Origin: Pocillopora damicornis
Taxonomy: Eukaryota
Length of the DNA: 64,000 nt
Direction of reading: 5' to 3'
NCBI RefSeq assembly: GCF_003704095.1
Contig: NW_020845387.1
Location: forward strand, 248,001 to 312,000
A program made the translations under genes and the position numbers. The notes beneath the pieces were generated by a model. That model saw only the letters and a program-made list of their open reading frames with translations. It was not told the DNA's origin and ran no database searches. This document shows, one piece after another, positions 20,986 to 25,685 of this stretch (position 1 is the stretch's first letter; every line of letters starts with the position of its first letter).

Positions 20986-22548
20986 TTTTGTAGTGTTTTT
21001 GTATGTAAAGCCGCGTTAATAAAGTCTACGTCGGCTTTGTACCAGTTCCCCTTGCAGGTGGTTTTTATATTTAATTCATTTTATAAATAAAGCTCGTATC
21101 ATCCTGAGCTTTGAATATTTTAGGTTGGATACCTACATGTTACTGTTTCTTAGTTAAAGGTAATTACAGTATTCAGTAAATGATTATAAAGAAAGAAAGA
21201 TACTTGAGAGCTGGAAGTCGTACATGGATGAGATCTGTGTGAATAAAGCGAGAGAATAGGTTGCTTTGAGATGCCATTGAACAATTCAGTCTTTTTGCGG
21301 TAAGTGCACCTTAAAAGGGTCAAGAAAAAAAAATTCCGAAGCCAATAAACCAGATCCACATGAGTTTTTATTGAATTTGATCCGAGAAAAGCGAAATAAC
21401 CTGTTTATAGGAGTTATACCTGAAAAATCAGTCATGAAAGCCAAGGAATTATTTCAAAATAAGTTGAATGATTACAACTTCACACAGCGGGAGAAAACTG
21501 GCGACAAAATTTTTTCAGTTAATCTTCTGCTTACTAACAACTGTTAAAAAAGTTAAACAAGAGTGAAAATTCGAGCAGTGAGTCGGCGTTAAGGTCGAAA
21601 TCTTTCCCTCTACCATAAAGAGGCTTTGTTATTATTTTCAATAGAAAGCTCAATAAATCAGTAAGCCGTTGATATAATTAAGCAAAAGTGGGTACTCTCA
21701 CGAAAGACTCATTCGTGAACTGTTGCGAAGAATGCAGATCACTTCGCCCTCTTGCCATGTCGCCCCGAAGCTGAATGACTTCGCCCCCTCTTACATCGTC
21801 TATCATAATTACCCATCGTGATGTTGAAAACATTCCAATACTTATACATTCAAAACAATCAAAGTAGTTTCTGTGTTCATTGAGTTTTTCACACTCAGGN
21901 NNNNNNNNNNNNNNNNNNNNNNNNNNNNNNNNNNNNNNNNNNNNNNNNNNNNNNNNNNNNNNNNNNNNNNNNNNNNNNNNNNNNNNNNNNNNNNNNNNNG
22001 AGAAAGGATTAACAAAGAGTCTCTCAAGTGAATTTGTGATCTCACCACAATTTTTATACCATCTCTTTCATAATTCTCAAGATTGCCCCTGAATATAAAT
22101 TTTGATAAAGTAGTTGTAACTTTCAATTTTAAGCTTGCCTTAGATCAAGTTACATAATACACAATTTTGATTAAGTTGTCATTTATTTTCAATTTTAAGC
22201 AAGCCTTAAATAAAGTCAGTCACTAAGTCCAGATTAAAACCCATGCATATTATGTAACTCTGTGTGACTTTTTTTTCTTACTGGCTTTAATTTTTTGTGA
22301 AACTTAGAAAACTGTGAACACAAGAAATAGTTACTAAAGGTTATGCCGTTTTGTGGAAAAAGCCAGTCAGGTGTCAGAAAACTAAACCATAAACAGCAGC
22401 TGTAAGGAATTTGTGGTTTGAGGTTTACTCATGTGCCCGACACTTAACTGTGAATGGTCAGAGCACAATTGGCCAAATATAATGAATTTTCAGTGTTCAT
22501 GGTTTCCTGAATCTTAAAGTAATTTAAGACATGCAAAAATATACTCAC

Positions 22549-23758
22549 TAACTGCTGCTGATAATCTTGTGTGTCTCCTGGCAAGATTTCTAACTACATT
22601 ATCCCTTGCTATCGTCTTGAGCCTGTCAGTGAAAGAAATCATATGCAAAAAAATTTTAGGTCTTTTGAAGTACAAATGACTCTAAAATTTACCCAGACTA
22701 CTTCATATTTTCTGCTTTTGTTAAATCTTCAAGAATTTTTTTCTTTTAACCATTCACATTAAAAATGAACAAGCAAGTGTCTTGTAGCTATGTTCAAAAG
22801 GAGTTAAGGAATCTGTGCTAATAAATATGGCTAAATACAGTGGTGGATAACTACTTTCATGAACTTTCCCACACAAACCCCCCAAGTGTATGTAAAAACT
22901 TAAATATATCATCAGAGGGCAAACCACAGTGCAAAATTAATTTCTCTGATTGCATTGTCTCTTCAAGCAGTCAGGAAAATGTTGCACTGATCTTGACTAA
23001 CAGTAAAATTTAAATTTCCACCAAAAGAGAAATAAATTGCTCTGTTTAGGGCAAATTTTCTGGAAGATGAAGGGGTTACATGATGCATGGGTTCTTCATA
23101 GCTCAAGTAAGGAAATACATAGTTGTCAAAGGAAGGGGATTGCATTCAACCACTTTCAGTATCGGGTATGTAGAAAGAGCCTAAGTTACTGAGCATTAGT
23201 TACCATGCATTTTTTTGTTTACTGCGGGGGTTCTACTTCCCATGTTTTACAACTGATTCAAACTGGTTTCCCACCCATTGAAAGGTTGATCACCTACATC
23301 AACCAAAAACGAGTTTTTCTTGAGAAAGCAGATCAATCCAACAATCTTATTAAACGGTTAATCGCAAAAGAACAGTACCTAGCTACACGTGACAACATCA
23401 CCAATAAATACTTACAATCCACAGTCTTGAAGAATGGACTTTCCCACTGCAGAGGACAAACTTCTTGCTAAAAATAAGAGAAACGGTTCGAATTATATAT
23501 TTAAGCTCATCATTTTGATCTGTTACATAATTAGTCGTTGATAACATCAACTGACAACCATGGAAGCAAAAATATCGTAGCACTAGTCACCTTGTGTCGC
23601 GCTGTTCGCATTCAAAGCTGTTTTCTGTGAAAAAATAAGAATCAGATCAGCCAGTGTATTATTTGATTGCTTTAAATCAGACTATCTGAATTTCTTACCG
23701 ATATTTGCACCGAAACACGAGCAATTGATCTAATACAACGTGCAGATAACGCCGCCAT
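22549..23758 (-). CDS. Small multi-exon protein with a mitochondrial-presequence-like N-terminus (paralog B of the head-to-head pair); terminal exon unresolved, possibly in the gap at 21900-21999
   Basis: Exons 23758-23699 (MAALSARCIRSIARVSVQIS), 23624-23591 (KTALNANSATQ), 23467-23416 (ARSLSSAVGKSILQDCG), 22622-22549 (LLKTIARDNVVRNLARRHTRLSAAV). Splice sites are canonical and intron phases 0,1,2,1 match the divergent plus-strand paralog. Confidence 0.75.
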
Positions 23759-23847
23759 TTTGCTACCTTCCCATCAACCTACACACGCTTAATAATGCAA
23801 CCGAAAAAGCGATGTACCATGATCAGCGGTAAATTCAAAATGGCGGC
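23751..23847. promoter_or_regulatory. Very compact bidirectional promoter; both ATGs sit inside YY1-type CAAAATGGCGGC motifs
   Basis: GCCGCCATTTTG at 23751-23762 (minus) and CAAAATGGCGGC at 23836-23847 (plus), with 81 nt between the start codons. Confidence 0.6.
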
Positions 23848-25685
23848 TGCAGCACGTTGTTTGCGTTCCCTGACTCGTTCAACATCTGCAACAAAGGTGA
23901 TCGATGTTAAAAGACCAGTCTGATCCATTAACTATAAATGCTAACCTTTATTTTCACATCTCTTACAGCATTTGTCCTCCTACGTCGTGAAAAATGTTTC
24001 ACAAAGTGAGTATAAAACTTATGTGATCACCACCGCAACACATGTTCTCTTAGGCATACCGGTAATCGTATTCATTATCCCCTCGATAACGATTTTCTTT
24101 AAACTTTTACTTACAGAAAGAATGTATTTCCCATGAATCTGCTCAGAGTGTTCCAGTGTTTAATCTTTCAAGCTAATCTCTGTCAGTGTACTTTATAATA
24201 ATCTTTAAACTAATGGCTGGTCATATCATACATGATATTGTTTACGTTTTACGTTTGTATACTTTTTTAATGCTCAAAGGTTGCAATGAATTTTCTAATG
24301 TTTGAACTTTGGGTAGTGTATACTGTAATCTAGTAGAATAAGTTGTCGGTATTTTTTTTGTTTCATTTATTTATTTATTTATATCAGAATCAAGTTCCAG
24401 TGTGTCATCACCACTCCTGAAGTCATTCCTCAGCACTGACAGTGGATTGTAAGTACAGTTGGGATTAAAATGTAATTCAAGAAGACCTGAACAATTGAGA
24501 TGATTATAAAATCTTTAAATCAACATAATTTGTTGGCTTGAAATATCTTTAAACCTCAGAGATTTTGAAGGATTACATGACTTACGGAACCCTAACCCAA
24601 AGCAATTGTTGGTCCCAGTGATCTGATATCACTGCTTGAAGTGCATTAATTGCATTAATTTGAATTGATTTCTCTAAAGGATAAGAGGTTCAGGAATGTC
24701 ATCCAGGATTAGTTTTAACAAAAGATTTGCACCAGTGTCCTTTGTCTGTAAGTACAGCATAATTCCTTGTTTTGTGTACTGTTCTGTGATGTCTTCAAAG
24801 CCAGCTTTTAGCTGTCACATCCAAAAGGAACTTTGGAATGCTAGCCACAGTACTGTTGTATTCCTTGGGTTAATACATAAGTAAGTGATAAAAGCTTTCT
24901 ATAAAGAGGTAGGCACCCATGGACACTTAAACATGTGAATAAACTTGAAATTTTCACCAATAATTTCATCACAACATTGCTTGAATGTGAATTAATATGT
25001 CTTAAGTAGAGGTATTTTGCCAAAATTGAATTTAAGTTTTGTTCTTCTCACCATATAATGCCTTCTGGGAGAATTATGTCAACACCAGGTTCATGCTGTG
25101 AGCTGCCAGCTGACAATGTCAGTAATGAACTCTTGAGTGCACTTCATCCCTTTTACAGTTATATCTGTAATTCAGCAATCTGCATGTCCACACTATGTTA
25201 TTTCTTGAATAACTTGTAACCTAAAAAGTAAGTAATAAAATGAAGAAACTTTAATAGGTAAACTTATTTAATAGGTAACTGTGGTGCTGCATCAGTGGGA
25301 GAGTACAATAGGGTAATTTAGTATTATCAACTAAGTTGATAACTAAGACTGACCACTGTAAGGGATTTCAAAGCTGTTTAGGGCGTTAGCCCTTAATCAG
25401 AGTGAATCACAGGAATTATTTGCTCTGATAAAGGGCTAACACTCAAAATGTGAGCTTTGAAAACCCTTACGGCAGTAATTTTACATAATCAACTTAGTTG
25501 ATAATACTAAATTACCCTTTAATAAGTAGTTGTGTTTTCTATCAACAGGTGCTGTTCCCAAGGCTTGTCCCCTCTCAATCGATGGAGGGAGTGATGGAGT
25601 TGATGCTTTGGATGGTAACCTTGGTGATGATGATGGTGATACTTGGTCTCAGGGTGAAGATGATCCTTATTTAGGGGTCACATGA
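23840..25685 (+). CDS. Small multi-exon protein (about 119 aa) with a basic Ser/Arg-rich presequence-like N-terminus and an acidic tail (paralog A); probable alternative C-terminal exons
   Basis: Exons 23840-23896, 23969-24005, 24388-24448, 24680-24747, 25549-25685 give MAAAARCLRSLTRSTSATK|HLSSYVVKNVSQ|KSSSSVSSPLLKSFLSTDSG|LIRGSGMSSRISFNKRFAPVSFV|CAVPKACPLSIDGGSDGVDALDGNLGDDDGDTWSQGEDDPYLGVT*; all introns are GT-AG. Confidence 0.78.
25275..25518. mobile_element. Palindromic Penelope-type repeat with two degenerate hammerhead-like cores in inverted orientation
   Basis: Arms 'ggtaatttagtattatcaactaagttgataa' and 'tcaacttagttgataatactaaattaccc'; centre 'gcgttagcccttaatcagag...ctctgataaagggctaacactc'. 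Confidence 0.65.

Follow-up and report, generated by a model that had tools for sequence, protein, structure and literature searches.

A stretch of 64,000 nucleotides from the genome of Pocillopora damicornis (contig NW_020845387.1, positions 248,001 to 312,000 of the forward strand) was analysed; this whole stretch is referred to as the window, and positions are counted from its first letter. It contains two small divergent genes, A (LOC113672373, plus strand) and B (LOC113672374, minus strand), which had been spliced by hand from the sequence in an initial annotation. Both hand-spliced genes are real: their transcripts are spliced and are present in poly(A) RNA libraries. The interpretation that we favour, and consider probable as a whole, is that A and B are old paralogs, each a protein-coding gene of five exons, that are transcribed divergently from one very compact promoter and may have a mitochondrial function. 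A mitochondrial location of the two proteins, judged by itself from their sequences, is proposed more tentatively, at a little short of an even chance.

Gene models and RNA evidence

Exon models were obtained by splicing positions 21800-26000 by script, and the joined exons were used for local translation, alignment and calculation of the ratio of nonsynonymous to synonymous substitution rates (dN/dS). A run search returned coral and marine-holobiont RNA runs in which 33-40 % of the window's sampled words were present. RNA evidence came from the Logan contigs of four runs, each from a different study (X1, X2, X3 and X6), aligned to positions 22000-26400. Logan contigs drop rare forms and show neither transcription starts nor expression levels. 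Spliced RNA over the predicted junctions had been proposed as a check in the initial annotation; in the four coral runs, six of the eight joints predicted for the two genes were found exactly, and a seventh was seen only as an 11-nt loose end. The exons of the two genes are as follows.

Gene A, LOC113672373
23840..23896 (+), exon 1, 57 nt; ATG at 23840; MAAAARCLRSLTRSTSATK; joint 23896>23969 in RNA contigs of X3 and X2
23969..24005 (+), exon 2, 37 nt; 11-nt loose end at 24005 equal to the start of exon 3; model as in RefSeq P0023
24388..24448 (+), exon 3, 61 nt; joint 24448>24680 in all four runs
24680..24747 (+), exon 4, 68 nt; joint 24747>25549 in all four runs
25549..25685 (+), coding part of exon 5, 137 nt; acidic tail ...DGNLGDDDGDTWS...; stop codon at 25683-25685
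25686..26305 (+), 3' untranslated region (UTR), end approximate; unspliced RNA contigs from 25549 to 26257-26305, with an adapter-like loose end at 26305

Gene B, LOC113672374
23699..23758 (-), exon 1, 60 nt; ATG at 23758; MAALSARCIRSIARVSVQIS; joint 23699>23624 in X1 and X6
23591..23624 (-), exon 2, 34 nt; joint 23591>23467 in X1 and X6
23416..23467 (-), exon 3, 52 nt; joint 23416>22622 in X1, X3 and X6
22549..22622 (-), exon 4, 74 nt; LKTIARDNVVRNLARRHTRLSAAV; loose end after it in each of the four runs
22054..22088 (-), last exon of gene B as initially proposed, unsupported; reached by no joint
21900..21999 (no strand), run of N, probable site of the canonical and alternative terminal exons, from their absence elsewhere and the spacing in Oculina

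The introns of gene A are all GT..AG and its product is 119 amino acids (aa) long. RNA support for intron 2 (24005>24388) consists only of the 11-nt loose end, and the intron is also backed by the RefSeq protein P0023, 'uncharacterized protein LOC113672373 [Pocillopora damicornis]', with which the model agrees from P0023 residue 8 onwards. Between exons 4 and 5 the contigs, which drop rare forms, hold only the constitutive joint 24747>25549. A further model, P0029, uses an internal acceptor inside exon 5, by which CAVPKACPLSIDGG is dropped. Two further in-frame ATGs upstream of the conserved start, 23795 and 23819 (+), serve the database models P0029 and P0023 and are absent in Oculina and Porites. 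Intron 4 holds, at 25310-25518, an inverted repeat resembling a miniature inverted-repeat transposable element, with 66-nt arms (83 % complementary) and an inner 31-nt pair; an RNA-contig depth of about 10^4 and many loose ends at these positions indicate a high-copy transcribed repeat.

The introns of gene B are likewise GT..AG, read as CT..AC in the contigs, and its product is about 115 aa long. Exons 1-4 encode the first 73 residues of LOC113672374 (P0060, 84 aa). After exon 4, the same 28-nt loose end was present in all four runs; in frame it reads SLVISNPPVM, the same residues as 74-83 of P0037, the Stylophora ortholog. This 28-nt sequence was found neither in the readable window nor in the rest of the assembly. 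The initial annotation had set the lower bound of the pair at 22046, with a last exon of gene B near 22054-22088. No RNA joint leads there, and the SLVISNPPVM loose end, missing from the readable window, matches an orthologous exon instead, so that the proposed exon is wrong and was rejected. Positions 22010-22576 have only low-depth unspliced contigs as cover. Neither the canonical nor the alternative terminal exon of gene B was found in the readable part of 19000-23000 or in the rest of the assembly, and in Oculina these exons lie 0.9-1.4 kb beyond exon 4. The true 3' end of gene B most likely falls in the N run at 21900-21999. The RefSeq protein P0060 reads past the exon 4 donor into the intron (22511-22548, -), where it ends in …SEYIFACLKLL and a stop codon; this model is evidently cut short by the assembly gap, into which the real terminal exons fall.

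A second, alternative terminal coding exon of gene B, NQI[LW]FT...EEDEIL..., was observed in Oculina (L002:2692-2824, -) and Porites (L005:3263-3397, -). It is kept between these two corals and gives a different acidic C-terminus (P0059, P0066). It does not resemble the canonical exon, and exon duplication as its origin is not supported, the alignment score being 23 against 23 +/- 5 for shuffles. A metagenome scan with the gene B terminal exon returned ten loci, all of them unspliced genomic contigs, and no transcript.

The pair had been described as hidden and its products as microproteins. Hidden is apt for the open reading frame (ORF) track, in which the exons of A and B, each too short, leave no meaningful ORF; it does not apply to RefSeq, where both genes are annotated. 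The term microprotein, for unannotated products of at most 100 aa, does not fit, since A has 119 aa, the B orthologs have 114-115 aa and both are RefSeq genes. A literature search on the six locus names returned no paper; the genes are annotated in RefSeq as 'uncharacterized' but undescribed in the literature.

Paralogy, selection and age of the pair

The exon sizes noted by hand (57/37/61/68 nt in A, 60/34/52/74 nt in B) were reproduced by the script, as were the intron phases, 0,1,2,1 in A and 0,1,2,1 in B. Every intron is GT..AG, and exon 3 ends alike in both genes, in ...GGATT/gtaagt, as had been pointed out. Local alignment of the products of exons 1-4 of A and B gave a score of 58, against 28 +/- 5 for shuffled sequences, and 2 of 5000 shuffles reached 58. 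The terminal exons also align (score 45 against 28 +/- 5.5 for shuffled sequences) and have the pattern PL.V[DE]...D[AS]L[DE]..GDDD(G)[DE]T[WF]S in common. When the ortholog alignments of A (A5) and B (A4) were compared by hhalign, a probability of 96.8 % and an E value of 3e-10 were obtained over 109 columns. At the level of sequence comparison, A and B were thereby found to be homologous over nearly their whole length, and the paralogy that had been claimed for them from their N-termini and identical phases was confirmed. Gene conversion between the first exons is not supported, orthologs being more alike than paralogs.

Exon sizes and phases are unchanged in Oculina and Porites. The dN/dS across orthologs, another of the checks proposed initially, was 0.20-0.33 for A and 0.16-0.22 for B, and both genes are under purifying selection. 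In gene B, 60 of 115 columns are invariant across seven coral genera; the exon 5 product of gene A is 67-100 % identical to the exon products of other corals.

Relatives were searched with gene A exon 5 as query and then by database protein identifiers. Full-length orthologs of A (119-125 aa) were found in Oculina, Montipora, Acropora and Porites, and orthologs of B (114-115 aa) in Desmophyllum, Oculina, Stylophora, Porites, Orbicella, Montipora and Acropora. An A-type protein (P0042) is present in the anemone Exaiptasia. Full-length orthologs occur in at least nine coral genera and one anemone. The relatives returned were cnidarian proteins only, together with unnamed metagenome and transcriptome fragments.

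In the window, as initially annotated, the pair sits between a BTB-BACK (Kelch-like) gene with its own start at 20985 (-) and a PSP-domain, ZCCHC8-like gene with its ATG at 26948 (+). The last exon of A continues unspliced to about 26257-26305, before the ZCCHC8 ATG, so that A does not form a 5' portion of ZCCHC8. The order B(-)/A(+)/ZCCHC8(+) recurs in Oculina (L002), where the ATGs are 68 bp apart, and in Porites (L005), where they are 95 bp apart; in Acropora A and B have adjacent LOC numbers on one contig. In Exaiptasia (L016:1-11375), A (+) and a B-type gene (-) are divergent and 8.9 kb apart, with an IDO (PF01231) gene between them. Since Exaiptasia has both paralogs, the duplication is older than the split between corals and anemones; the intervening IDO gene implies that the tight pairing was broken there or arose later. 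The gene orders date the tight head-to-head layout to no later than the split between the two main clades of stony corals. The search for cnidarian relatives and synteny suggested by the initial annotation thus bears out its proposal of an old inverted duplication kept head to head. The locus is an ordinary arrangement that carries an orphan hexacoral family.

The spacer and the start-codon motif

The ATGs of A and B, at 23840 (+) and 23758 (-), have 81 bp between them, exactly as first reported; the genes are on opposite strands, and their 5' ends face each other within 1 kb. Both are transcribed, as seen from spliced contigs with strand-specific GT..AG or CT..AC joints. The features of the spacer and of the start codons are listed below.

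23759..23839 (no strand), 81-bp spacer, putative shared bidirectional promoter; conserved blocks from a three-species alignment
23770-23779, beside the B start, spacer block TTCCCATCAA, candidate factor site, kept in Pocillopora, Oculina and Porites
23823-23836, beside the A start, spacer block CAGCGGTAAATTC (CAGCGGT[A/T]A[A/T]TTC), candidate factor site, kept in Pocillopora, Oculina and Porites
23751..23761 (-), TISU/YY1-like motif AAAATGGCGGC over the B ATG; motif scan and ortholog comparison
23837..23847 (+), TISU/YY1-like motif AAAATGGCGGC over the A ATG; motif scan and ortholog comparison
26945-26955 (+), TISU/YY1-like motif AAAATGGCGGC over the ZCCHC8-like ATG; motif scan of the window

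The start codons of A and B each lie inside a TISU/YY1-type motif, AA[A/G]ATGGCGGC (AARATGGCGGC), which accounts for the Met-Ala-Ala shared by the two proteins. Three copies of the motif are present in the window against 0.01 expected, and the motif is kept at the A and B ATGs in four species. Compared with the TISU consensus SAASATGGCGGC, the Pocillopora A and B sequence CAAAATGGCGGC agrees at 11 of 12 positions and the sequence CAAGATGGCGGC of Oculina B and Exaiptasia A at 12 of 12, the ATG being the conserved start. Genome-wide, SAARATGGCGGC was counted 716 times and the reversed control 54 times (about 13-fold enriched); together with the motif at the ZCCHC8-like start, this suggests that a TISU/YY1-type start context is common in Pocillopora damicornis.

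TISU elements lie within +30 of the transcription start site and contain the start codon in most TISU genes (PMC2518114; PMC9658832). They are found in mRNAs with extremely short 5'UTRs and act as YY1 transcription elements (PMC2518114; PMC9658832). A link between TISU and mitochondrial genes in mammals is the subject of a paper that PMC9658832 cites as its reference 38; it is one of the points in favour of a mitochondrial role of A and B. The presence of a motif of this type at both ATGs fits very short 5'UTRs and a single compact bidirectional promoter. Transcription would begin a short way ahead of each ATG, at a distance of a few to about 30 nt, and the two mirrored TISU elements with the 81-bp spacer would constitute a minimal bidirectional promoter by which A and B are co-expressed. 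The two 5'UTRs would be limited in length by the 81-bp spacer provided that transcription begins within it. The duplication and the bidirectional promoter are together well supported as an interpretation, the geometry of the promoter being inferred.

Inside the first exons, GCACGTTG[T/C], encoding Ala-Arg-Cys, occurs at 23849-23857 (+) and again at 23740-23748 (-). It is invariant, synonymous sites included, in all eight genes compared (A and B of Pocillopora, Oculina, Porites and Exaiptasia), and could represent a DNA or RNA element arranged as an inverted repeat on the two sides of the spacer. The synonymous rate (dS) of exon 1 is below that of codons 20-50. These two observations indicate that exon 1 is probably under regulatory as well as coding constraint, and part of it may double as regulatory DNA.

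The coral pair resembles known head-to-head paralog pairs under one bidirectional promoter, of which vertebrate COL4A1/COL4A2 is the classic example, in that the paralogs are divergent, the spacer is about 100 bp and the arrangement has persisted for hundreds of millions of years. It differs in that its products are tiny (115-119 aa) orphans, the ATGs are separated by only 68-95 bp, and each start codon sits in a mirrored TISU-type motif. The likeness to the mammalian TISU/YY1 element is that the motif covers the initiating ATG, yields Met-Ala-Ala and would imply very short 5'UTRs; the differences are that the element was described and tested in mammals and that the coral locus has two copies opposite one another, 81 bp apart.

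Protein function and significance of the pair

In all 15 A and B orthologs the first Asp or Glu occurs at residue 45-50, leaving the first 44-49 residues free of acidic side chains. The first 40 residues contain 5-7 Lys or Arg and many Ser, Thr and Ala; the Arg/Ser/Ala-rich, acid-free N-termini of the initial annotation, a statement on composition only, therefore hold for all orthologs. An amphipathic stretch covers about residues 4-16, with a maximum hydrophobic moment of 0.80-0.88 at residues 3-16, and the last 42 residues contain 11-13 Asp or Glu. No transmembrane-grade hydrophobic segment was found in the 15 sequences. A mitochondrial presequence is plausible and fits this composition. The acid-free, Arg/Ser/Ala-rich, amphipathic N-terminus would direct import into mitochondria, where A and B may act as small soluble or complex-associated factors by way of a conserved tail of acidic and aromatic residues, GDDD(G)[DE]T[WF]S; the basic, helix-prone middle of protein B, ...IARDN..NLARRHTRLSAAV, might also contribute. 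Taken whole, this account of function is one that we hold at slightly under even odds.

Several points weigh against the favoured interpretation. AlphaFold models gene B as three low-confidence helices spanning residues 2-78 (mean predicted local distance difference test score, pLDDT, 62) with a disordered acidic tail, and gene A is predicted to be disordered (pLDDT 51). The first 70 residues of protein B are conserved to a degree far above that of typical cleaved presequences. Pfam contains no family for A, B, the alternative isoform of B or the anemone protein; no chain was found with PDB sequence profiles; and Foldseek of the gene B model, whose low confidence makes the rows meaningless, returned nothing at E <= 0.001 in the PDB. 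For the promoter, TISU/YY1 function has been demonstrated in mammals only, the contigs show no transcription starts and so leave the shared-promoter geometry inferred, and the start of gene A in Pocillopora could lie further upstream, at the ATGs at 23795 or 23819.

Three candidate matches were rejected: a sub-threshold Pfam match of P0021 to Nicastrin (E 0.05), a PDB profile match to beta-arrestin (E 1.3), taken as noise, and a likeness of RRHTRLS in protein B to CPI-17-type PP1 inhibitors, which Pfam does not support.

The same pair and promoter could encode proteins that are not mitochondrial but cytosolic or nuclear, largely disordered regulators, a reading that we regard as possible and as the less likely one. 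Their working parts would be the basic helices, the basic-kinase-type sites RRHT/RLS of B and the acidic-aromatic tails, while the presequence look would stem from composition and from constraint at the DNA level (TISU plus GCACGTTG). The near-invariance of the 73 N-terminal residues of B in corals, unlike that of most cleaved presequences, favours such proteins, as do the helices at 2-78 with a disordered acidic tail modelled for B and the disorder modelled for A. Met-Ala-Ala is moreover set by the ATGGCGGC motif, Ala-Arg-Cys is fixed even at synonymous sites, and ZCCHC8, a nuclear protein, has the same start motif, so that TISU does not imply mitochondria. Against this stand the 44-49 acid-free residues of every A and B ortholog with their amphipathic helix at 4-16, and the language-model look-alikes, which are small organelle-targeted proteins; neither nuclear localisation nor any other known motif was established. 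That A and B are products of chance hand-splicing, or untranslated exons of the Kelch-like or ZCCHC8 genes, agrees with exons individually too short for the ORF track and is otherwise refuted: the RNA joints are exact, orthologs exist in at least nine coral genera and an anemone, and dN/dS is well below 1. The A transcript stops at about 26300, short of the ZCCHC8 ATG at 26948, and the Kelch-like gene has its own start at 20985. To this reading we assign next to no probability.

In the ESM Atlas, searched by features, the two first-ranked clusters for A were plant NFD6 clusters (score 0.91; 192 and 190 of 256 features) and an NFD6 cluster ranked third for B (0.86); recognition was 1700, too low for a high score to carry much meaning, and scores under or near 0.9 are leads only. 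The cluster name is 'NUCLEAR FUSION DEFECTIVE 6, chloroplastic/mitochondrial-like'. These look-alikes, small organellar proteins of plants, count towards a mitochondrial location, but such low recognition makes the matches weak, a point against it, and leaves them a lead only. A and B might be very distant true homologs of the plant NFD6/NOXY2-like organellar proteins, members of an old eukaryotic family kept in hexacorals, which we consider unlikely. The Atlas ranks support this view, the same family had been named independently in the initial annotation, and noxy2 mutants have abnormal mitochondrial aggregates (PMC8358658). Apart from the low recognition, however, the likeness may be one of transit-peptide composition alone, Pfam gave no match, and the relatives returned are only cnidarian proteins and unnamed metagenome and transcriptome fragments. 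The plant proteins are similar in size (about 90-130 aa), have an Ala/Arg/Ser-rich, transit-peptide-like N-terminus and are the nearest clusters by language-model features; they differ in kingdom, and the coral proteins carry the long acidic tail. The NFD6 papers state neither a molecular function nor a sequence.

A more far-reaching version, which we consider improbable, has A and B as the first relatives of NFD6/NOXY2 in animals, members of an ancient family of small mitochondrial proteins that persists in hexacorals as a co-regulated pair under a mirrored TISU/YY1 minimal promoter; if true, the TISU start-site system would date to before the cnidarian-bilaterian split. Under the favoured interpretation of an ancient pair with a compact shared promoter, the locus would be a clean natural minimal bidirectional promoter, with 68-95 bp between the starts and each start in a TISU-type element. 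The enrichment of the motif genome-wide suggests that cnidarians, too, use the TISU/YY1 start context described in mammals. In practical terms, an assembly gap has left the Pocillopora damicornis RefSeq model of gene B without its terminal exons. Two ancient paralogs have been kept together across both major stony-coral clades, and they represent an orphan hexacoral family with strongly conserved motifs; if mitochondrial, its members would be candidate lineage-specific organelle factors in reef-building corals.

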